Sequence record: PQ464595.1
Direction: 5' to 3' (one strand)
DNA length: 64,000 nucleotides
Positions within the stretch are counted from its first letter, which is position 1; each line of letters starts with the position of its first letter. Shown here one piece after another: positions 25,209 to 50,894 of this stretch. The position numbers were made by a program, and so were the translations under genes. A model generated the notes under the pieces. It worked only from the letters and a program-made list of their open reading frames with translations, did no database searches and was not told the origin of the DNA.

Positions 25209-26324
25209 TTATGCGAACATCTTTTGGATCTCGGTGGTTTGGATACCCTTAACGTGAGTACGAATATCCTTCGCTTCCAGTTTTCCAGATTTAACCATAT
25301 CTTCAATGTCGCCTACTGGAGCATCGGTAAAGCGATCAAATACCTTCACAATAAGGTCTTCGAGTTCATTATCCATCTCACGACGAATTAAGAAGTACTC
25401 GGTGACTTTGTAAAGGAATTCTTCACCACCGTTATTTTTGATGTTCATAGTACTGAACAGTTCTACCATTTCTTCCGGTTTCTTTTTGCGGAATTTCAGC
25501 AGACTTTCAGTATGCGTCTTAATGAAGTTACTGAACTTCACAAAACGTGCTGGCAGTTTAATACCACCAACAACATATTCTTTATTTGGTGTTAACTTAG
25601 AAAGAATAACAGTCCAAATAAATTCTTCGCGGTGTGAATCTGAGCTAGTATTTACGATATGATCGATAAGCTCCAGTTCTTTTTGAGTTGCCTCAAAACC
25701 TGGCAGCAATACAGTTAACGCACCAATATCTTTCAGGTACTTCAGGAAGATACTTGGTTTTGCTTCGCTGAATGCTTTCTCGAATTCAACATAAACACGC
25801 TCTTTGGTCAGATGATTGATTTCACCATCCTTAACCATTTTACGAACCATATCATCAGTACTTTTATGTACGGTGAAATCCGCATAGCGAGCTTTGAAAC
25901 GTGCCAAACGCAGAACACGCAGAGGATCTTCTTTGAACGCATCCGATACGTGACGAAGTACCTTGTTCTGAAGGTCTTCTTTGCCTTTATATGGGTCAAC
26001 ATGGGTTTTAGTACCAATGTCCCAAGCGATGGCGTTGATAGTCAGGTCGCGACGGAACAGATCTTGCTCCAGTGTTACACCCTGAGTTTCGACGGTGAAA
26101 CCATCATAACCAGTACCAGTCTTACGCTCGATACGTGCCAGTGCGTATTCGTCACCATCTGGTGACAGGAATACAGGGAAGTCAGCACCGACTTGCTTGT
26201 AACCTTGACTTTTCAGGTATTCAATGTCCTTCGGCTTAGCACCGACCAGTACATAATCCTTGTCTTTTGGTTGAAGACCCAGGATCTTATCACGGACAAA
26301 GCCACCTACGATATACTTTTTCAT
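25209..26324 (-). CDS. cca: tRNA nucleotidyltransferase (CCA-adding enzyme), short form
   Basis: YIVGGFVRD, DKDYV, VGADFPVF, EYALAR, DLFRRDLTINA, EDPLRVLRLARF; no recognisable HD domain. Confidence 0.93.
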   Translation of the reverse strand: MKKYIVGGFVRDKILGLQPKDKDYVLVGAKPKDIEYLKSQGYKQVGADFPVFLSPDGDEYALARIERKTGTGYDGFTVETQGVTLEQDLFRRDLTINAIAWDIGTKTHVDPYKGKEDLQNKVLRHVSDAFKEDPLRVLRLARFKARYADFTVHKSTDDMVRKMVKDGEINHLTKERVYVEFEKAFSEAKPSIFLKYLKDIGALTVLLPGFEATQKELELIDHIVNTSSDSHREEFIWTVILSKLTPNKEYVVGGIKLPARFVKFSNFIKTHTESLLKFRKKKPEEMVELFSTMNIKNNGGEEFLYKVTEYFLIRREMDNELEDLIVKVFDRFTDAPVGDIEDMVKSGKLEAKDIRTHVKGIQTTEIQKMFA

Positions 26325-30661: not shown

Positions 30662-32176
30662 TTAACCAAGTACTTGATAACGTGGTGCGTCGATTACGCG
30701 GAGCATAACTTTCACTGGATCTACATCCTCACCGCTCAGAATTGCTTCCAACACGCTTGGAGAGAAACCACTTACCAGAGCTACGTTGTTCTGGTCGAAA
30801 CGAACAGGATTGTTACCCGGACGTGCGTTAAGGTTCCAGAAGACGATAGTTGGCAGTTCATAACCCGCTGCTGCGAAGTCTGCTTTCGCAGAGTTGAACG
30901 CCGTAGCGTTCCAACCACCCGCATTGCTTGGGTTGAATTCCATGTCAGACAGAACAATCAAGTTCTTAGGCATCTGGTCTGCTGGTACTTGCTGAGCTTT
31001 CGCTACACGCAGTACTTCACGGAATGCCGCCTGAATGTTAGTGCTACCACCCCAGAACTGACCACTGCGATAGTTCATCAGGTCACGGTACTTAGCAGCA
31101 ATGTTATTACCTTTCAGTTCAAACATTTGTGGCTGAGTACTGAAGTTCAGGAACAAGTTCTTGAACGCACCTTCTTGCTTATCGGCAATGTACAGACCCA
31201 AAGAAATCGCAACGTTCATACAAGTCATGCCTGTAGAACCAGCAGAACAGTTCATTGAAGAACTAGTATCTACCATTGGTATTGCTTTGTTGTCGCCCAT
31301 GAAGTTACGCAACTGTTCCCATTGAGCAACGCCCAAAGTTTCAGCAGCAGAACCGTTACTCAAACGAGTTGTTACATCGTATGGGTACAGAGCACCAGCG
31401 TTTACCTTCACTTCGCCTTTTTCGATTGAAGCCAGGAACTCACGGTAGCGAGCTTCGTCACGCTTCATGAACGCTGGCAGATAACGAGCACTAGCAACTG
31501 ATGGCAGCTTGCTGTATTCGATTTCTTCCCATTCGTTAGCACACATCTTCTGTTCAACAGTGTTGCTCAGAGATGACAGAAGCTTACGATACGCACGTTC
31601 GTTGATGTTCATGGTGGTCATGATCTCACGAGCGATTTTGTTGTTCGCAGCACGGTTTTTGTTCGCTTCGGTGTTCATATCAACAACGCCAGCGGCGTTC
31701 TTCTTGAACTTGTAAACACGAGGCATCCACTTAGCACACAGTGCGTTACCAGTGGTCAACGCTTCTGAGATTGCCTGGTAAGCCAGGGTCTTAGCAGCGG
31801 CAGTTTTGAAGATCAGAAGATCATCCCAACGACCGAAATCTGCCAGTACTGGAATTACACGCAGTACAGCTTCAGGATGCTTAACTTCAAGGTACTTCAG
31901 AAGTTCGCGAGGGGTATTACGTTCACCAGCACCACCACGAATATCACGTGCCCAAAGAATCATCTGGAGAGCAAGCGTAGGGTTCGCCTCGTATGCTGCG
32001 TCAAATGAGTTTTTGTACACGCCGAGATCTTTGCCACGCAAAGAACCGATCATGAAGAACAGATCTACCAGCGGGTTCAGCGTACTTTTCAGTGATGCCG
32101 CACCGTTTGCGGTGGTAGAACGATTTTGTGCTGCTGTTGTGTTAACGTTGTTAACTGCGTTTTTAAATGCTGACAT
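30662..32176 (-). CDS. DUF2828-type TROVE/Ro60-like protein with vWA domain
   Basis: NPLVDLFF, WARDIRGGAGER, FGRWDDL, CAKWMPR, MIDAS VDTSSSM, VLSDMEF, IVFWNL, VSGFSP. Confidence 0.85.
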   Translation of the reverse strand: MSAFKNAVNNVNTTAAQNRSTTANGAASLKSTLNPLVDLFFMIGSLRGKDLGVYKNSFDAAYEANPTLALQMILWARDIRGGAGERNTPRELLKYLEVKHPEAVLRVIPVLADFGRWDDLLIFKTAAAKTLAYQAISEALTTGNALCAKWMPRVYKFKKNAAGVVDMNTEANKNRAANNKIAREIMTTMNINERAYRKLLSSLSNTVEQKMCANEWEEIEYSKLPSVASARYLPAFMKRDEARYREFLASIEKGEVKVNAGALYPYDVTTRLSNGSAAETLGVAQWEQLRNFMGDNKAIPMVDTSSSMNCSAGSTGMTCMNVAISLGLYIADKQEGAFKNLFLNFSTQPQMFELKGNNIAAKYRDLMNYRSGQFWGGSTNIQAAFREVLRVAKAQQVPADQMPKNLIVLSDMEFNPSNAGGWNATAFNSAKADFAAAGYELPTIVFWNLNARPGNNPVRFDQNNVALVSGFSPSVLEAILSGEDVDPVKVMLRVIDAPRYQVLG

Positions 32177-32823: not shown

Positions 32824-34089
32824 TTAATCCTCCACTTTCAGAAGATATTTGTTGTTGATGACTTTGAAGTGGATAGTTTGACCATTCACTTTTACAGTAC
32901 TTTTGTACACGTCACCTTCACAAATCGGAGCTACGATACTCGCATGATCCGCTGAATCAAGTGCTTCTTTAATGGAATTGTATACATCGAAGAAGTATAC
33001 AATCTCACCCTGCGGAGCTACTGTCAGACCCAGGATGCGAGTCAGTTCGATGAAATCCGCATCATCAAGGAAGTTCTGAGCATCAATATCCCATACGCGG
33101 AATGCGTAGAACTGATGTTCTTCCAGTTGTTCGATGTTGCCCTGGATACCTGGACCCATACATTCGCCCTGAATAGCAAGCTGGCGGTTGTTATCGGTAC
33201 AGTACTTACGCAGACTTTCAATAATGTCGTCTTTCAGTGCTGCTTTCCAGAATGCCGCACTTTCATCGAACTTCAGTGCGAGGTTACGTGAACACACGAT
33301 ACCCTGACCATCTTCCCACTGGAACGGGTAAGGAATGACTTCTGCGACTTCCAGCGTCTGAGTTTCCTCATTGAACACTTTCAGATCATCATCAATCTTC
33401 TCTACGAAGAAGTCAGGATTGCTTACGAAAGCAATAGTCTGACTTGAACCTTCCAGTTTCAGAGATTTACGGAACGGTACGCCTTTCATAGTCTGACTGA
33501 ACTTACCGAATACGTTCTGAATACGATCTTCATCAGTTTTCGGAATGAAGATTGGGAAGTTCCCAGCAGTCTTCACACGACCAGCACCAGTACCGCCATT
33601 ACGTTCATCAGGACGTTCGTACTTAGTCACGTTGATGAATTGTTCCAGACCCTGACGGTTATCTTCCAGGTCAGCAAGAATTTCTACTGAATTGGACAGT
33701 ACTTCACTTGCTGACGGAGCCAGGAAGTAACGAACATTCGGGTTCAGTTCGTAGAAGATTTCATAGAACGCCGCAATCGGCAGAGCAAGACCTTGAGAAA
33801 TTTGCCCACGAAGTTTGATCGTGCGGAGGCGAATACGCTCTACACCGTTTTCATCAGTTTTAGTACCTTTTCCAGCAAGGAAAGCGAAACGACCGTCATT
33901 CGCAGGAAGGAATGAGTCAATTTCAAAGAACATGCAGTAGTCACCTACCGCAAATTCACCTTTCTTAATAACTACGTTCCAGCCGTCGATGGTTGCTACT
34001 TCGATAGCATCAGCATTCGGAATTGGATTGATCGCGTTTATTTTGCGAACAGTTACCAGACGACGACCTTCAGTTACGAGTTCAGCCAT
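32824..34089 (-). CDS. RNA ligase, Rnl2-type with N-terminal OB/tRNA-binding-like domain (DRB0094-like)
   Basis: IPNADAIEVA...GWNVV, RGQISQGL, FIPKTDEDRIQN, motif I KLEGSS, AIQGECMGPGIQGN, EGDVYK, FKVINNKYLL. Confidence 0.9.
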   Translation of the reverse strand: MAELVTEGRRLVTVRKINAINPIPNADAIEVATIDGWNVVIKKGEFAVGDYCMFFEIDSFLPANDGRFAFLAGKGTKTDENGVERIRLRTIKLRGQISQGLALPIAAFYEIFYELNPNVRYFLAPSASEVLSNSVEILADLEDNRQGLEQFINVTKYERPDERNGGTGAGRVKTAGNFPIFIPKTDEDRIQNVFGKFSQTMKGVPFRKSLKLEGSSQTIAFVSNPDFFVEKIDDDLKVFNEETQTLEVAEVIPYPFQWEDGQGIVCSRNLALKFDESAAFWKAALKDDIIESLRKYCTDNNRQLAIQGECMGPGIQGNIEQLEEHQFYAFRVWDIDAQNFLDDADFIELTRILGLTVAPQGEIVYFFDVYNSIKEALDSADHASIVAPICEGDVYKSTVKVNGQTIHFKVINNKYLLKVED

Positions 34090-42715: not shown

Positions 42716-42745
42716 GGTACACCTCTTAATACTTAGGTTATACCA

Positions 42746-42753
42746 TATTTAAT
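42746..42753 (-). promoter_or_regulatory. Late promoter (ATTAAATA)
   Basis: Between the terminator and the spanins. Confidence 0.55.
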
Positions 42754-42755
42754 GG

Positions 42756-42780
42756 AAAACCCGCCATTCCTGACGGGTTT
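42756..42780 (-). terminator. Intrinsic terminator after the ACP gene
   Basis: AAACCCG...CGGGTTTT. Confidence 0.6.
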
Positions 42781-42788
42781 AAGTGCTA

Positions 42789-43196
42789 TTAATGTGTAAC
42801 CGCACGTAAAATATCATCAACGGTACGGAAGCTTTCAGCAACCCAATCGTCGATTTCAACATTGAATTCTTCTTCAACTGCCATGATGATTTCAATCATG
42901 TCCAGTGAATCCATCTGAAGTTCTTCAACCAGGAACTGAATAGATGCTTCTGGTTTTACGTACTCATTGATCACATCAATATGTGAACCGGATTGATCTG
43001 CGAAGATCTTACGAAGTTTATTCATAGTATGATCTTCAACTTTGAATTCACGGTTAACCATAGTGTCGATGGTTTCCTGCCGCAGATTCTTGATTGTTTC
43101 TTCAACTTGCTGAAGAATCATATAACGTTCAGTACTGCTGGTTTCGTTCAGATATACAGACTCTAACTCACGCAGTACTTGATAAAGACTTGGCAT
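42789..43196 (-). CDS. Acyl carrier protein homolog with ~55-aa N-terminal extension
   Basis: LVEELQMDSLDMIEIIMAVEEEFNVEIDD...TVDDI aligns with E. coli AcpP [29 protein letters not shown]; Ser97 in DSL. Confidence 0.9.
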   Translation of the reverse strand: MPSLYQVLRELESVYLNETSSTERYMILQQVEETIKNLRQETIDTMVNREFKVEDHTMNKLRKIFADQSGSHIDVINEYVKPEASIQFLVEELQMDSLDMIEIIMAVEEEFNVEIDDWVAESFRTVDDILRAVTH

Positions 43197-43743
43197 GTTT
43201 GATCCTCTCTTTGAATCCAGCAGTAACCCGAATGAGTAGACGCTGGCAATTGGTTTCTAGTAACGGACAGTTGTGAAGTACTTTACTGGTATACTTATGA
43301 GCCGTGCTTGTTGGAGCAACAGCTTCTACCAGTACTTCATTCCTGAGTACATCTTGTACTGAATTGTACCCAATAACGTTGATTGGGTTCATAACGAAGC
43401 TCGTACCCTGAACAGTACCGAAGATGATATGTGTTTCAGGTTCGAAGTCATCATGAATGTCATTAGTACAATCCAAATGGTATCCGTACAGTTGTGAACC
43501 ACTATCACCCGCAGATAAATTACGAACGCGATAATCCACGACAACTGACCGATCATCGTATTTTTTGACTTCATCAATCATACGCTGTACCAATTGTGCC
43601 ATATCGGGAGGGATGTTGGCAAGTACTTTTTGCGGGGTTTCGTATTTAAATTCCTGAACAGGGAGGTTATCAGGAACCTCCCAACTGAACAGATTTAATT
43701 CAATACTACCCGTAGGTTGTAAAGTATTAATGTCCACAGTCAT
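43168..43743 (-). CDS. 2OG-Fe(II) oxygenase-like protein
   Basis: H89-x-D91 (GYHLD), distal H157 (VLHNCP), R168/R172 (RLLIRV). Confidence 0.55.
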   Translation of the reverse strand: MTVDINTLQPTGSIELNLFSWEVPDNLPVQEFKYETPQKVLANIPPDMAQLVQRMIDEVKKYDDRSVVVDYRVRNLSAGDSGSQLYGYHLDCTNDIHDDFEPETHIIFGTVQGTSFVMNPINVIGYNSVQDVLRNEVLVEAVAPTSTAHKYTSKVLHNCPLLETNCQRLLIRVTAGFKERIKHAKSLSSTA

Positions 43744-44206
43744 ATTCTTTTACCGTAATCTGAACAGTTTCACCAGTAAAATCAATGACAATATTGAAGT
43801 TAGTTTGATAAACTACTTCTAAGCCATCTTCGAACTTCGCAGCACTAAGAATGTCTTTAATTTTTTGAGCATCTTCGTTTGAAAGATTGCTGTTAGCAGT
43901 TTTGTATGCTTCTGGACACTCACTTTCATCACGCCAGTACAAACGCTCAACATACTCACTTACGGTATCCCATGAACGGGTATCATCATGAGTAATGAAT
44001 ACTTCAGAATCATGAGTACATTCTTCTCCGTCATTCCATTCTGGAGTTTCCCCTAGAACGAAAATGAAATCCAGTGCTGGGAACTGAGCCTTAAGCTCAG
44101 CACAATCGTATTTTAATTCATCAAGGAATTTAGCCTGAAGATTCTTTTTCAGAGTTTTTAAAGTTTCTTGGTAATCAGTTACAGCAGTTTTCACATTATC
44201 GAACAT
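43727..44206 (-). CDS. NDGxxCxH-family paralog 4
   Basis: GETPEWNDGEECTH...EYDCGH; start moved to ATG 44206. Confidence 0.75.
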   Translation of the reverse strand: MFDNVKTAVTDYQETLKTLKKNLQAKFLDELKYDCAELKAQFPALDFIFVLGETPEWNDGEECTHDSEVFITHDDTRSWDTVSEYVERLYWRDESECPEAYKTANSNLSNEDAQKIKDILSAAKFEDGLEVVYQTNFNIVIDFTGETVQITVKEYDCGH

Positions 44207-44207
44207 A

Positions 44208-44666
44208 TTAGTATCCACAGTAGTAATGATGAACTTCGATAGTTGGTTCTTCACCAGTTAGATCGATATAAACTTTGAAGTTAGTATCATTTTGTTCTTC
44301 AAGTAGATCTTCCAGATGACCAATGATGAAACGGATTTCATCATTATTTTCTGGTTTGATGATATTAATAGGATTTTCATCAAGATAATCTTCATATTCA
44401 TCATATTCTAAATTTTCTGGAAGACCTAAGAACTCTTGATTATCATCAGCAATTTCATACAAATCATCATCATAATATGGAGTACTCCAGTGTTCACATG
44501 GATCTCCATCGTTAAATGATGGTGTGTAACCAATAATAATGATTTTGTTTAGACCGTCAAATTTTTTCAATTTAACCAATCCATCTTTGATAATGCGGTC
44601 AATATTATCGGAAAGATACTTACGATGTTCGATATAAGTATCGAATGAATTAGTGTCCACAATCAT
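44208..44666 (-). CDS. NDGxxCxH-family paralog 3
   Basis: GYTPSFNDGDPCEH...HYYCGY. Confidence 0.75.
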   Translation of the reverse strand: MIVDTNSFDTYIEHRKYLSDNIDRIIKDGLVKLKKFDGLNKIIIIGYTPSFNDGDPCEHWSTPYYDDDLYEIADDNQEFLGLPENLEYDEYEDYLDENPINIIKPENNDEIRFIIGHLEDLLEEQNDTNFKVYIDLTGEEPTIEVHHYYCGY

Positions 44667-45147
44667 ATTCCTCTAAGGTAATATCAGTTTCTTCAGTTGT
44701 AAAATCGAACAAAGCCAAATAATTAGTATATTCAATTTGTTCAACCAGATAATCCAGAAGTTGGATTAACTCACGAACTTTTGGTTCATCAGCGTCAGAA
44801 TAGGTGTTTACATTTTCAAAACCTTCCCAATTCCACGGTTCACCAGATTCCTGAACTTCTTCTGGAACATTCATCATACGGAAGAATGAATAGTCTTCTT
44901 GTTCCGCAAATTCCTGAAAATGATAATCACGGAACAGACATTCGCTGCTATGAGTACAAGCATCACCATCGTTAAACCCTGGAGTATAACCATAGATCAC
45001 GAGCTTATTCATTCCTGGAATAGCTTTTAATTGAGCAGCAACGTCTTTCAGAATCTGACGTTTATTAGTACTCAAAAAGTTTGACAAGTCGCATTTCGCG
45101 GCGTCAGATTTAGTTTTCAGTTCTTGAAATTGTTCAAACAGTGTCAT
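44650..45147 (-). CDS. NDGxxCxH-family paralog 2
   Basis: GYTPGFNDGDACTH...EYDCGH; start moved to ATG 45147. Confidence 0.75.
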   Translation of the reverse strand: MTLFEQFQELKTKSDAAKCDLSNFLSTNKRQILKDVAAQLKAIPGMNKLVIYGYTPGFNDGDACTHSSECLFRDYHFQEFAEQEDYSFFRMMNVPEEVQESGEPWNWEGFENVNTYSDADEPKVRELIQLLDYLVEQIEYTNYLALFDFTTEETDITLEEYDCGH

Positions 45148-45148
45148 A

Positions 45149-45565
45149 TTAGTATCCGCAGTAGTATTCTTCATGTTTAATGGTGATCTCACCATCCTGG
45201 ATAATAAATCCAAATTTGTAGTTCGTTCCGTAGATATGAATCAGAATTTCATCCAGTACTGCTAGTTTAACTTCAATGGCACGACCTTCTGTATCATTCA
45301 GATTATTATCATCATAATCTTCTGCTACATCTTCGATGAAATCAGTAATATCATTGTCCATGTAGCGAATCTGAATGTCGCTACTATGTTCACATGCTTC
45401 ACCATCATTCCACTCAGGAGTATAACCAACAATCATACCGTTGGTTAATCCTGGATGGTCAATACCCAATTCTTTAATGAACTCCTTCATGATTTCGTCA
45501 TGATGTTCATTCAGGAGGGTATTATATACTTCACGAGCGGTTTTAAATTGGTCTAGGATGTTCAT
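45149..45565 (-). CDS. NDGxxCxH-family paralog 1
   Basis: GYTPEWNDGEACEH...EYYCGY; start moved to ATG 45565 (TAATG). Confidence 0.75.
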   Translation of the reverse strand: MNILDQFKTAREVYNTLLNEHHDEIMKEFIKELGIDHPGLTNGMIVGYTPEWNDGEACEHSSDIQIRYMDNDITDFIEDVAEDYDDNNLNDTEGRAIEVKLAVLDEILIHIYGTNYKFGFIIQDGEITIKHEEYYCGY

Positions 45566-46815
45566 TATTTGTTTCCATACCACTGCATCTCACGCATTTC
45601 AATTAGCAGTTTAGCTGCCCTTTTAATGTCTGGAGAGTGTGGTAATACAGATTGTTTATATAGTACTTCACGGATGTAATGATCTTTTTCTTGCCAGTAT
45701 TCCATCATTTCATCGAACGTCCACGCACCATTACGGATAGCCAGAAGTTCTGCTGCGTCAGGTCGTTTGACATGAACTTCACCAGTACTCAATGCTTCTT
45801 CAGCAGTACGCATTAGACGAACAACATGCATCGCATGTTTTGTATCGTAGCCGTTCTGTTGTTCTAACTCAGAACGTGCTTCGTTACGGTTTGCTTTCCA
45901 TGTATGATAGTTGTGACGGTTGTCAGAACTTTTCTCGTATTCTTCCTTGTTGAATTTTACGATCAGCTTTGGTTGTTCTTTAACTTCTTCAAGTGATAGA
46001 TTGCTCGTATCAATACGATGAACGCTACCATCATCATTCAGTGTACGACCACCTTCTTTTGGAACAACACCAAATGTGTTATCACCGTAAGGAACTAACT
46101 GATAGCCGTAATTGTAATTCAGAATTGTGAAGTCACGATCCAGTACTTGATGATCAAAATAGTTATGAACCAGTTTGATGAAGTGATACTGTTTCAATGG
46201 TTGAGTACTCAACATCTGAAGGGAAGCATTACGAAGTTGTTTTTCGAAATGGAAATCCATTGAGGTTTTAACATACTGACCACGACCGCGTTCAACGTCC
46301 AGAAGACCCATAACATAGTCAGGGAATGTATCACCAATCCACTGAATAGTCTGTTCACATGGGAAAGCATCGAAGAATTCCTGGAGAATACGAACACCAG
46401 TACGTTCACGATCCATCCAGCCATGATGGTTCTTCATACGTTTAGCCTGGTTATGAGCATAGCCAGTATAGGTAAACGCAATCTTAGAAGACAGTAAATC
46501 GCCACGAGCCGCACGAAGATGATCGTACAATCCAGTACTAACCTGAATGTCACCTTCATCAACCCACAGTGATTCTAGGATGTTCGGGTTCGCATCAAGA
46601 TACAGTTTCATGTAGTTGTTAAGTTCGTAGTACTTAGTATCTTCTTCTTTAGAATCGGTTACTTCATTTACGGTGAAGAACGGAGTCAGGATGAATTCTT
46701 TATCAGCCATGAAGATACCACGGAAATCGGTATCTGAGGTTGGAGTACTAGTACCGTAAGCCTGGGAACCTGCCAGGTGTCGGACAATAAGATTGTCTAA
46801 ATGATTATCTGCCAT
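45565..46815 (-). CDS. RlaP-type (Pol beta superfamily) nucleotidyltransferase
   Basis: AGSQAYGTSTPTSDTDFRGIF, ANPNILE, YDTKHAMHVVRL, LLAIRNG. Confidence 0.85.
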   Translation of the reverse strand: MADNHLDNLIVRHLAGSQAYGTSTPTSDTDFRGIFMADKEFILTPFFTVNEVTDSKEEDTKYYELNNYMKLYLDANPNILESLWVDEGDIQVSTGLYDHLRAARGDLLSSKIAFTYTGYAHNQAKRMKNHHGWMDRERTGVRILQEFFDAFPCEQTIQWIGDTFPDYVMGLLDVERGRGQYVKTSMDFHFEKQLRNASLQMLSTQPLKQYHFIKLVHNYFDHQVLDRDFTILNYNYGYQLVPYGDNTFGVVPKEGGRTLNDDGSVHRIDTSNLSLEEVKEQPKLIVKFNKEEYEKSSDNRHNYHTWKANRNEARSELEQQNGYDTKHAMHVVRLMRTAEEALSTGEVHVKRPDAAELLAIRNGAWTFDEMMEYWQEKDHYIREVLYKQSVLPHSPDIKRAAKLLIEMREMQWYGNK

Positions 46816-46919
46816 TTTGCTTCCTTGTTGGAAAATCCAAGATGTTATAAACCATAACAGGAACTACTTTTTCACGTTGTAGTCTTCCTTGTGATTGTCG
46901 GTATCTTAACGAATTGGTA

Positions 46920-47780
46920 TTATAGATAGTTTTCTCGCCCATATTGTAATAGCCTTTCAATGATTAGTTCGTAGTACTGGTCGGACTTTTCAATAAGAAC
47001 ACAATTACGATTAAGCTGTACAGCACTTAATGCTGTTGTTCCTGAACCACCAAATGGATCAAGAATCCAGTCCTGTTCTTCAGTACTGAGTTTGATAAAG
47101 AAGTTCGGTATGTCAATAGGATAAACCGCAGGATGACCAATATTCAAGTTACTGGTACTACATGTAAGAACGTTACTTGGGCGTACCATATCTTCAGCAA
47201 CACGCTTAGACATGTTCATAGTACTGCCATTAGTGACGTTGTGTTCACCTTTGTTTTTACGTTTCTTCTCACTTTCCAGATATTTTGAAGTACTTTGTAC
47301 CTTCACTTCATCAGGAAAGAATTTATATTTTGAGGTGTGATTAAACTGAAAGATTCGTTCGAATCCATCCTTCAATCGGGTTTTAGCACCAGTTGGGAAA
47401 GGATTAGTCTTGTTCCAAATGTACTCGTCGCTCCAGTTATATTCGTCAGACATAGCAATAATGGTGCGATACACATAGGTATCACGCTTACCTTTATCAA
47501 CATGTTCTTTGATATTAAAGAAGTACGAGCCATCTTCATGAATGACATTCATAATATCAGTACTGATATTCTTGTACCATTCAGGAAAGTCTTCAGGACT
47601 TATGCTGTCATACACATCTTTACGCTGTTCAGCGTAAGGAGGGGATGTAATAGCAGAATTGAACTTAACTTCCGATTCGTGGAGTTCTTTAAGCACTTCA
47701 GCACAATCACCATTAATTACGATGATTGTGCTCGTGCCTAACTCAATAACTTGATGCGGGGATTGTCCGGTATATTCCAT
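46920..47780 (-). CDS. Beta-class amino-DNA methyltransferase (N4-C/N6-A), SPPY type; no adjacent restriction enzyme
   Basis: NGDC, catalytic ITSPPY, YIWNK, HPAVYP, SAM-binding ILDPFGGSGTT. Confidence 0.92.
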   Translation of the reverse strand: MEYTGQSPHQVIELGTSTIIVINGDCAEVLKELHESEVKFNSAITSPPYAEQRKDVYDSISPEDFPEWYKNISTDIMNVIHEDGSYFFNIKEHVDKGKRDTYVYRTIIAMSDEYNWSDEYIWNKTNPFPTGAKTRLKDGFERIFQFNHTSKYKFFPDEVKVQSTSKYLESEKKRKNKGEHNVTNGSTMNMSKRVAEDMVRPSNVLTCSTSNLNIGHPAVYPIDIPNFFIKLSTEEQDWILDPFGGSGTTALSAVQLNRNCVLIEKSDQYYELIIERLLQYGRENYL

Positions 47781-48884: not shown

Positions 48885-49190
48885 TCATTCGTCACTAAGC
48901 ATTTCAACTATCGTGTTGAAAACTTCAATTATCACATCTCCGTGGCATTCCAACGGAGCACAAGAGCATCCGATACGTAGACCGCTTAGGCTCAATACGT
49001 CATCGGTTGTTATTGTACCACTCTCCAGGCAGTCATACAAGTACTCTCTGTACATTTGTATAGAAACTTGGCGAGAAATTCCCGCCCCTGGATCGAGGGG
49101 AAACGGATTTCCCCACATTGTACCACGTCCGATGTAAATGTCAAACTCGCCTTTGTGACGATTTACAAGGACAGGTGTAACGTATTCCAC
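48885..49190 (-). CDS. DUF4326 family protein
   Basis: VNRH...DIYIGRGTMWGNPF...LSGLRIGCSCAPLECHGDVI. Confidence 0.85.
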   Translation of the reverse strand: MEYVTPVLVNRHKGEFDIYIGRGTMWGNPFPLDPGAGISRQVSIQMYREYLYDCLESGTITTDDVLSLSGLRIGCSCAPLECHGDVIIEVFNTIVEMLSDE

Positions 49191-49940
49191 TTATTCCTCG
49201 TCTTTATCGAAGACCAAGTGCATACGCTCAAGAGTACTGAGATCTTCGAATTTCTGACCTACCAGTACTTCAGTTACATGAGAACGGATTACTTCTGTAC
49301 CTTCATGCATCTTGATGTAATTCTGACGTTTGAAGAATGAACCTTCTTTCCATGCTTTCGGATAATCATTCCAGTTAATACCAGCTTCCAGAAGCATATC
49401 AAGCTTGTTATTAGTGGACTTACCCTGAAGCTTAGAATGCCCGAACGTCGCGTGAGCAGCCATAGAGATACTGTTACGTACCGCATCTTGAACACGCCAC
49501 AGTACTGCGTTAGTGGCTTCTGAGCGTGATGGAACCTGGAATACACGACAATCGAAGTGTGGCAGACGTTTAGAGCATTCTTCAGGGAAATGCTGAAGTG
49601 CCATTGATACAAACATCGCAGTTGCCAATGATGCCAGTACTGAAATCATCTTCTGCTTTTTGCCAGAAAAGAACACATCACTTTCATAATCACGTTGCCA
49701 GAACACCAAAGTAATTTCATCACTCTGAGTATATCCAACAGTCGCCCCAGTTTCTTCAACTAGGTACTTAGTAACAGCTTGCATGATCATAGTCATGTTC
49801 ATGTCAAACGGTTTAGTCATGCTCTTAGTAAATTTACTGAAAGAGCGACCATCCAGCCGTGCTACAATTGGAATCATCGGCATGAATTTATCTGCCGTTT
49901 CCATCTTTTCATAATGCTTGATACGATCACCGAGATTCAT
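49191..49940 (-). CDS. tRNA-His guanylyltransferase Thg1-like 3'-5' polymerase
   Basis: ARLDGRSFSKFT, GYTQSDEITL, HFDCRVF, WRVQDAVRNS, WNDYP. Confidence 0.93.
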   Translation of the reverse strand: MNLGDRIKHYEKMETADKFMPMIPIVARLDGRSFSKFTKSMTKPFDMNMTMIMQAVTKYLVEETGATVGYTQSDEITLVFWQRDYESDVFFSGKKQKMISVLASLATAMFVSMALQHFPEECSKRLPHFDCRVFQVPSRSEATNAVLWRVQDAVRNSISMAAHATFGHSKLQGKSTNNKLDMLLEAGINWNDYPKAWKEGSFFKRQNYIKMHEGTEVIRSHVTEVLVGQKFEDLSTLERMHLVFDKDEE

Positions 49941-50224: not shown

Positions 50225-50759
50225 TGTTTTGTACCTCTAATTTCTCCAACTCCTGTTGAAGTTTATATTCATTTTGACGCATATGATCTAATGACCGAAC
50301 CACCCGGAACATCATTAATTCTTCATGATCAGTTAAGAACTCTTCACCATTAATGTAAATTTTTGGTAAAGGTGAATCTTTATCAGGGTCATGGTTATAA
50401 CCTGAACGAAAATTATAAATCTGAAAGTACATCTGATCATACGCAGTATCATCAAGTACCATTCTTGAATCTTCAGTTGTGTCACGAAATTCAAATCGCT
50501 TTGGATTTCGTGCCATAGCAGTTAATATTGCCAATACTTCAGGACGACACTTACTTAGCTGGTACTTAGTGTTAATAATATGACGAGATGCGTCTTTACG
50601 CTTGTTGAAATATTTTGTGTACTCCAACAACTTACCAGCACTTTTACGCAGTACTAAAAGATGTAAATGACGATGAATATCAAAGATTTCTTTAACATTC
50701 AACTCAGGATTCTTTTTACCTGGTGGTGGCGGATTTCGTGGCATTGGTTGATACCCCAT
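50175..50759 (-). CDS. 'LRK' family paralog
   Basis: LVLRKSAGKLLE...KYQLSKC...MARNPKRF. Confidence 0.6.
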   Translation of the reverse strand: MGYQPMPRNPPPPGKKNPELNVKEIFDIHRHLHLLVLRKSAGKLLEYTKYFNKRKDASRHIINTKYQLSKCRPEVLAILTAMARNPKRFEFRDTTEDSRMVLDDTAYDQMYFQIYNFRSGYNHDPDKDSPLPKIYINGEEFLTDHEELMMFRVVRSLDHMRQNEYKLQQELEKLEVQNSVFEIYQAEKNQTHTS

Positions 50760-50774
50760 AGAATTAATTCCTAT

Positions 50775-50803
50775 ATTCTAGACGAAGCATAGCGGCCTGT
50801 CAA
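50775..50803 (-). promoter_or_regulatory. Sigma70 promoter TTGACA-N17-TAGAAT
   Basis: TTGACAGG class with an A-rich upstream element. Confidence 0.75.
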
Positions 50804-50846
50804 GGACTATTTTCACTTAATTTGGTTATTTTTTTGTGGTACGCAC

Positions 50847-50875
50847 ATTATAACAGGTACAAAAAAAGCGGTCAA
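50847..50875 (-). promoter_or_regulatory. Second tandem promoter TTGACC-N17-TATAAT
   Basis: -35 lies inside the tail-fibre terminator hairpin. Confidence 0.6.
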
Positions 50876-50885
50876 TGACCGCTTT
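50861..50885 (-). terminator. Intrinsic terminator after the tail-fibre operon
   Basis: AAAGCGGTC-ATT-GACCGCTTT-TTTT. Confidence 0.8.
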
Positions 50886-50894
50886 GATTTTTTG

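Follow-up and report, generated by a model that had tools for sequence, protein, structure and literature searches.

Hydroxylases dependent on 2-oxoglutarate (2OG) are encoded beside several precursor genes in ribosomal-peptide clusters. Among phage enzymes, a subclass of thymidine dioxygenases belonging to the TET/JBP family is reported to be encoded with a separate protein, ParB, and to require it (PMC13229309). Two bacterial RlaP nucleotidyltransferases, both from Pseudomonas, add 1–2 nucleotides to RNA 3' ends with a preference for damaged RNA, and NrdC.11 of phage T4 has been assigned to the same family (PMC12776372); across jumbo phages the distribution of RlaP follows that of RNA ligases (PMC7824862). 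The locus described here occupies positions 42789–46815 of a 64,000-nucleotide (nt) window (the whole stretch of DNA analysed, from record PQ464595.1) and carries seven minus-strand genes, for an RlaP-family nucleotidyltransferase, four acidic Cys/His paralogs (parA to parD), a 2OG oxygenase-like protein (P6) and a protein resembling acyl carrier protein (ACP). The window was matched at 100% identity to the Erwinia jumbo phage Kaldavass (366.6 kb), which is RaK2-like. Xanthomonas phage XbC2 was 87% identical to the region and Pectobacterium phage CBB 78% over part of it, both being RaK2-like jumbo phages as well. From the genes that travel together in other phages, the seven very probably form a modular architecture of three separable parts: RlaP, a paralog-oxygenase module and the ACP-like protein.

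An earlier note on this DNA had described a seven-gene operon with close junctions. The seven minus-strand open reading frames (ORFs) were present at the coordinates given there and agreed with the GenBank coding sequences of PQ464595.1, and an overlap or a 1-nt spacer was read from the sequence at each junction among the seven genes. The note had also proposed that all seven serve one joint pathway (carrier-tethered substrate, hydroxylation, nucleotidylation), which would be contradicted by shuffling or independent loss of the genes in relatives. The pathway was not supported by the comparison: RlaP and ACP are separable from the pair of paralogs and P6 and are lost independently of it, and the paralogs and P6 stay together in nearly all cases.

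A set of 140 loci was assembled from reference phages, IMG/VR contigs, bacterial genomes and metagenomes, and every ORF was scanned with the family profiles. Paralog genes lay directly upstream of 68 of the 69 distinct P6 genes, the exception being a contig that ends 317 nt upstream; this share is inflated, since the paralog had served as bait for most loci. Where P6 was the bait, paralogs were present in all 14 loci recovered, and in at least seven Acinetobacter phage records hit by both the paralog and the P6 tblastn queries the two hits adjoined. One paralog copy per P6 was most frequent (43 genes), followed by two (12), three (10) and four (3), and in 58 of 68 cases the paralog stop lay ≤15 nt from the P6 start, taken as that of the longest ORF. 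Both flanking genes, RlaP before the pair and ACP after it, were present in 18 contexts, every one of them RaK2-like, and neither was present in 26. Mimasvirus, Eneladusvirus, Alcyoneusvirus and uncultured phages related to them retain the complete order RlaP, paralogs, P6, ACP; Acinetobacter phages BS46 and TaPaz have the pair without RlaP or ACP, as do a few rhizobial genomes and many contigs from IMG/VR and metagenomes. The opposite case is E. coli phage WPEC5, in which RlaP is followed by an ACP-like gene and then spanins, with no paralog-P6 pair, and the rV5-like phage CR3 carries RlaP without a paralog, P6 or ACP-like gene in the region examined. RlaP homologs were present in 324 phage records, against 40 for P6. 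The stand-alone pair had heterogeneous neighbours (DNA ligase, exonuclease, endonuclease VII, HNH, Thg1, thymidylate synthase), and no recurring third partner was detected among 45 neighbouring ORFs in 11 unrelated contigs. In the seven-gene region PADLOC returned nothing relevant and NCBIfam nothing except ACP; a counter-defence cassette, the note's alternative to a pathway, was made neither more nor less likely.

P6 and its family profiles had no sequence match in Pfam, NCBIfam or PDB, and all 183 relatives recovered as profile clusters were unannotated and free of any Pfam domain; the RefSeq name of the K64-1 ortholog is 'oxidoreductase'. The AlphaFold2 (AF2) model of P6 (predicted local distance difference test, pLDDT, 92.7; predicted template modelling score 0.88) was searched against PDB with Foldseek. 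Nearly all of the top 40 matches were Fe/2OG dioxygenases (E from 4e-4, probability ~1.0, template modelling (TM) score 0.4–0.48), including HygX, ABH2, ColD, proline hydroxylase and AviO1/EvdO2. Five residues were never substituted among 69 distinct relatives, at identities down to 18%: H89 (66/66 ungapped), D91 (65/65), H157 (61/61), R168 (61/61) and R172 (60/60). By position, H89, D91 and H157 would be the iron triad and R168, 11 residues past H157, the 2OG-binding arginine. The predicted fold and this invariant His-x-Asp...His...Arg set, arranged as in the Fe(II)/2OG dioxygenase superfamily, support what had been a guess in the earlier note. P6 differs from the superfamily in that its family members (160–200 amino acids, aa) are much smaller than most and are phage-restricted, with a dedicated small-protein gene ahead. 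On the predicted structure, the most fitting description of P6 is that of a new family within the superfamily, very small in size and restricted to phages. A role as a carrier-dependent halogenase was rejected, the triad containing Asp and ACP being usually absent nearby. P6 is also set apart from carrier-dependent 2OG hydroxylases and halogenases of the SyrB2/CurA-Hal type, since among 59 distinct P6 genes whose downstream sequence was long enough, 39 are not followed by an ACP-like gene.

The four Cys/His proteins proved to be true paralogs, as the earlier note had called them: all belong to phrog_10375 and share invariant Cys/His columns. Identity among the four is 29–31%, against 64% between parA and its CBB ortholog, which marks the copies as old and separately maintained. 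All are strongly acidic (isoelectric point, pI, 4.1–4.3; net charge about -19 to -26). Residues are numbered after parA, and conservation was taken from an alignment of 65 family sequences. T49 and D54 were invariant, and G47, P50, N53, G55, C58, H60, T114, Y134, C136 and G137 each occurred in at least 90%. The conserved features are a Thr-Pro...Asn-Asp-Gly...Cys-x-His loop and a C-terminal Cys-Gly, after which one final residue (Tyr or His) ends the protein; an acidic insert of variable length separates the conserved parts. The AF2 model of parA (pLDDT 92) is alpha/beta, with a long helix, two strands, two helices and a hairpin. Its fold search against PDB gave nothing significant, the best weak matches being the DUF600/EsaG immunity proteins 8guo_A and 3i0t/2ia1 (E 0.08–0.17, probability 0.3–0.54, TM 0.34–0.37); against viral models it found uncharacterised relatives only, and the paralog profiles had no match among PDB sequences.

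A profile search for the paralog recovered 952 representative clusters, nearly all stand-alone proteins of 130–200 aa. A Pfam scan of 65 paralog relatives, of long paralog variants and of ten distant P6 relatives found no domains or fusions, and cluster names were absent for ten distant paralogs. Among 185,579 bacterial and archaeal species, searched with one genome each, only five loci were found, so the family is essentially viral. Three very long repeat proteins (P0068, P0085 and P0153) matched the acidic segment only and were taken as false positives. One paralog (P0196, 6001–6807 of locus L009) is extended at the N-terminus by a domain of ~115 aa that has a Cys/His cluster of its own and no Pfam match; a P6-like gene follows it all the same.

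Column 60 of the paralog alignment tracked the presence of the oxygenase gene. A His was found there in 95 paralogs with P6 ≤2.2 kb downstream and in 7 without, and a Phe in 7 with and 14 without (Fisher p = 9e-9 on distinct paralog sequences, uncorrected for kinship). The Phe forms usually keep both Cys columns, and a role of His60 as a mere structural zinc ligand was rejected because Phe replaces it while those columns persist. The pattern suggests that His60 and its pocket matter specifically where P6 is present. Most P6-less paralogs belong to a subtype that also diverges at columns 45 and 47 (W45/Q47/F60) and frequently forms tandem arrays. Members at loci L056, L060, L111, L120, L125 and L131 have Phe60, mostly Gln47 and often lack the C-terminal Cys-Gly; their arrays hold two or three copies with no nearby oxygenase, and the one at L060 lies in a Nocardia genome.

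From these observations the following mechanism is proposed. The four paralogs and P6 are probably an enlarged version of a self-sufficient, phage-specific module of two genes whose products are translated together. P6 would be an active Fe/2OG oxygenase working on or with the paralogs; it would use Fe(II), 2-oxoglutarate and O2 to oxidise, in the simplest case hydroxylate, the adjoining paralogs in or near the invariant loop, and the oxidation would mature acidic effectors, which would act on factors of the host or the phage. Taken as a whole, with the three-part division and the module mechanism included, this is the best explanation found, rated somewhat short of an even chance. That the paralogs are the substrates of P6 is a more doubtful step, read from the gene pattern; it is preferred because a single enzyme would serve one to four small proteins, each old and conserved on its own, and because a conserved residue in the paralogs varies with enzyme presence. 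Several points weigh against the proposal. Adjacency fits an enzyme and its partner as well as an enzyme and its substrate, and the P6-paralog link is drawn from gene data. The P6 sequence hits no curated 2OG family, and the TM-scores of the fold matches are modest. The sampling by paralog bait has been mentioned. The coupling to column 60 is not strict, with seven Phe-type paralogs adjoining P6 and seven His-type ones lacking it within 2.2 kb, and because the signal comes largely from one divergent subtype it reflects few independent events. A lineage-specific link of the pair to RlaP and ACP is conceivable as well, because synteny is kept in RaK2-like phages. A wider version, in which a minimal Fe/2OG oxygenase oxidises dedicated acidic effectors in a phage-wide system and jumbo phages expanded the set to four for several host targets, is speculative and on balance unlikely. 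If true, enzyme-matured phage effectors would be a previously unrecognised class, possibly for counter-defence.

The main competing explanation makes the paralogs subunits of the oxygenase (targeting adaptors, regulators or metal donors), with P6 acting on a host protein, RNA or DNA; we rate it as rather unlikely. The nearly invariant Cys, His and Asp columns could make a metal site and the variable acidic insert could bind targets, and tight gene coupling, constant order and the AlkB-type DNA repair enzymes among the P6 fold matches would all suit it. So would the thymidine dioxygenases, which are reported to need a separate ParB regulator (PMC13229309); the likeness is that of a phage 2OG enzyme encoded with a separate protein, and the difference is that P6 gave no TET/JBP-specific match and no paralog resembles ParB. 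As many as four copies of ancient divergence for a single enzyme would be unusual in cofactor delivery. Paralog genes, often in tandem, also occur without a nearby P6, where an adaptor or metal donor should not persist; an effector role is preferred over that of adaptor or metal donor because such family members exist without the enzyme.

It is quite improbable that the paralogs and P6 are unrelated neighbours, the former stand-alone acidic inhibitors (DNA-mimic-like or immunity-protein-like) and the latter an independent enzyme. The strong acidity of the paralogs, a copy number that varies as in immunity-gene arrays, the existence of members without P6 and the weak fold matches to DUF600/EsaG nuclease-immunity proteins would fit such inhibitors. 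Those matches are non-significant (all E >0.08), the state of His60 tracks P6 presence, and order and spacing are kept in very divergent phages where all other neighbours differ. Least probable is the single seven-protein pathway, with an ACP-tethered substrate, hydroxylation by P6, RlaP-like nucleotidylation and the paralogs as metal-binding helpers: the order kept in 18 distinct contexts, the coupled junctions, an ACP attachment Ser retained in most RaK2-like lineages and the existence of carrier-dependent 2OG enzymes (the CurA halogenase ranked low among the P6 fold matches) are outweighed by the 26 contexts in which the pair has neither flanking gene, the far wider spread of RlaP, the arrangement in WPEC5, the replacement of the ACP Ser in RaK2/K64-1 despite the pair, the action of characterised RlaP enzymes on RNA ends (PMC12776372) and an ACP-like protein listed for Eneladusvirus virion preparations in a table that does not name the nucleotidyltransferase (PMC7760394).

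Ribosomal-peptide tailoring clusters resemble the module in that an enzyme gene comes after one or several genes in tandem whose small protein products are related. They differ in that the paralogs are folded domains of 130–200 aa instead of short leader-core peptides, for which reason the paralogs were rejected as precursors, and in that the pair is not accompanied by a protease, a transporter or any other gene for maturation. Literature searches on family numbers, locus tags and phage 2OG enzymes found no description of a paralog-P6 module, and as far as these searches reach the fixed module is undescribed. RlaP and ACP are of known kinds, P6 is a new family in a known superfamily, and the paralog family has no known relative. 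Both families of the pair are common in phage sequence data at the numbers of representative clusters given above, with no Pfam family and no solved relative. Two sets of hypothetical proteins thus become one defined two-gene object, of which the first question is whether the oxygenase modifies its neighbours; in RaK2-like jumbo phages the phage ACP should not be assumed to be the partner of the oxygenase.

Table 1. Features of the seven-gene block of phage Kaldavass and of its borders (positions in the window; aa, amino acids; nt, nucleotides).
Feature	Coordinates	Strand	Remarks
RlaP-family Pol-beta nucleotidyltransferase, 416 aa	45565..46815	(-)	PF10127 and phrog_388
parA, acidic Cys/His protein, 138 aa	45149..45565	(-)	phrog_10375, 8e-43; pI 4.2
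parB, 165 aa from ATG 45147	44650..45147	(-)	phrog_10375, 3e-37
parC, 152 aa	44208..44666	(-)	phrog_10375, 3e-30; pI 4.1
parD, 159 aa, copy adjoining the oxygenase gene	43727..44206	(-)	phrog_10375, 2e-40
P6, minimal Fe(II)/2-oxoglutarate oxygenase-like protein, 191 aa, predicted double-stranded beta-helix fold	43168..43743	(-)	phrog_21561, 2e-111
ACP-like protein, 135 aa, ~55-aa helical N-terminal extension and C-terminal ACP domain	42789..43196	(-)	PF00550
RlaP/parA junction		(-)	overlap 1 nt
parA/parB junction		(-)	spacer 1 nt with parB ATG at 45147
parB/parC junction		(-)	overlap 17 nt
parC/parD junction		(-)	spacer 1 nt
parD/P6 junction		(-)	overlap 17 nt
P6/ACP junction		(-)	overlap 29 nt
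Terminator-like hairpin	42757..42780	(-)	closes the gene block; -14.7 kcal/mol, z = -3.7
Intergenic region	50760..50894	(-)	terminator hairpin and two sigma-70-like promoter matches; only gap >7 nt between 50759 and 42789

The RlaP label of the nucleotidyltransferase was upheld by PF10127 (58.4 bits against a cutoff of 23, E 1.1e-15, residues 9–131). The Pol-beta catalytic columns Gly-Ser and Asp-x-Asp are present, and G16, S17, D28 and D30 were invariant in six phage homologs at identities down to 42%. The protein had no PDB sequence match. Its full length is covered by phrog_388 'nucleotidyltransferase' (5e-78), and it departs from the described RlaP family in a long C-terminal part that is covered by phrog_388 only. 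As a CitX/MdcG-type holo-ACP synthase the protein was rejected, because it passes the RlaP cutoff and is mostly found without an ACP. Elsewhere in the window lie an RNA ligase gene (32824–34089, the nearest at ~11.5 kb), a tRNA nucleotidyltransferase gene (25209–26324) and an annotated RNA-binding protein gene (30662–32176). A Thg1-like tRNA-His guanylyltransferase gene (49191–49940) belongs to the same gene run as RlaP; neither it nor the ligase or tRNA nucleotidyltransferase gene adjoins RlaP. The RNA ligase, Thg1-like and CCA-adding enzymes, together with RlaP and the RNA-binding protein, would make up a spread-out RNA-repair toolkit of the phage. The Kaldavass RlaP is best read, from its sequence family, as a putative RNA-repair enzyme outside any small-molecule pathway. 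Going by the published biochemistry of the family, it would extend damaged RNA 3' ends by one or two nucleotides.

The ACP label was likewise borne out, by PF00550 (29.1 bits against a cutoff of 20.8, residues 92–133) and by the presence of the attachment Ser. Residues 61–131 matched type II fatty acid synthase ACPs in PDB (best 2ehs, 8e-10, attachment Ser aligned), with 98 PDB ACP sequences at E ≤1e-3; scores against the NCBIfam AcpP models were below cutoff (55 against 71). The protein thus resembles AcpP-like type II ACPs in its C-terminal 75 residues and in the Asp-Ser-Leu attachment site, and differs in the N-terminal extension, which is conserved among RaK2-like phages, and in the loss of the attachment Ser in two lineages. 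The Ser was kept in all sampled RaK2-like lineages but RaK2/K64-1, which have Thr; in E. coli phage WPEC5 the residue is Trp. Three Eneladusvirus phages provide a further difference: liquid chromatography-tandem mass spectrometry of their virion preparations detected an ortholog (PMC7760394, Table S5). The preparations came from Erwinia phages pEa_SNUABM_12/47/50, and a virion-associated ACP would be unusual. The ACP-like protein may act on its own, as a lineage-specific neighbour of the pair. Its gene always lies just upstream of the spanin genes, also in E. coli phages without the paralog-P6 pair. The corresponding position in Erwinia phage Hallingskeid (L012, 5455–6069) is taken by a 204-aa protein that is only 14% identical to the ACP-like family, in a poor alignment, and has no attachment-site motif.

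The seven genes had also been taken as one unit. The hairpin at the far end agrees with that, and the consensus scan found no minus-strand terminator-like site within the block. At the other end the limit was not confirmed, since the tight packing runs on upstream through nine more genes. The RlaP start overlaps a small 45-aa ORF by 11 nt, this ORF overlaps a DNA methyltransferase gene, and all junctions from the RlaP start up to 50759 are overlaps or gaps ≤7 nt; because the packing carries on to 50759, it is not special to the seven genes. Probably they make up the distal half of a longer unit, ~16 genes over ~8 kb, with the hairpin at 42757–42780 as its end; this run also holds the Thg1-like gene, a DUF4326 gene and the DNA methyltransferase gene. 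Such a unit would probably be transcribed early. Its start is likely the intergenic region at 50760–50894. There, a hairpin with a T-run (50885–50865) forms a strong terminator for the preceding 914-aa gene, two promoter matches (50875–50847 and 50803–50775) each agree with the sigma-70-like consensus at 11/12, and a ribosome-binding site stands ahead of the ATG at 50759. The promoter assignment has consensus matches as its whole basis, which counts against it; over the whole scanned stretch promoter-like matches were not enriched (38 observed, 43 expected from shuffles). Promoter-like and terminator-like matches at 49144–49070 lie inside a coding gene and were discarded.

Between the methyltransferase and RlaP genes (46805–46942), Kaldavass is without a 111-aa gene that is present in XbC2, CBB and, in shorter form, GAP32; in comparison with loci L002 (10242–10577) and L003 (9457–9792) it keeps the 45-aa ORF only.

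The start of parB is placed at 45195 in GenBank, which gives a 47-nt overlap with parA; the ATG at 45147 is backed by the CBB ortholog and was preferred. At three junctions (43727–43743, 44650–44666 and 45145–45151) the last paralog codons are read a second time, in a different frame, as the beginning of the next gene. The N-termini of parC and P6 are similar because the conserved last codons of the preceding paralog double as their start, and the junction-encoded residues also sit just ahead of the preferred parB start. This suggests that the paralog array grew by tandem duplication with the junction included.

The hairpin at 42757–42780 was not equalled by any of 200 shuffles, and its stem is unchanged in XbC2 and CBB. 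Its U-tract has four bases only, and it was missed by the consensus terminator scan. Directly after it (42725–42756) comes a 16-nt A/T-rich stretch that is identical in Kaldavass, XbC2 and CBB and is followed by the i-spanin gene; it may serve the lysis genes as a phage-specific promoter.

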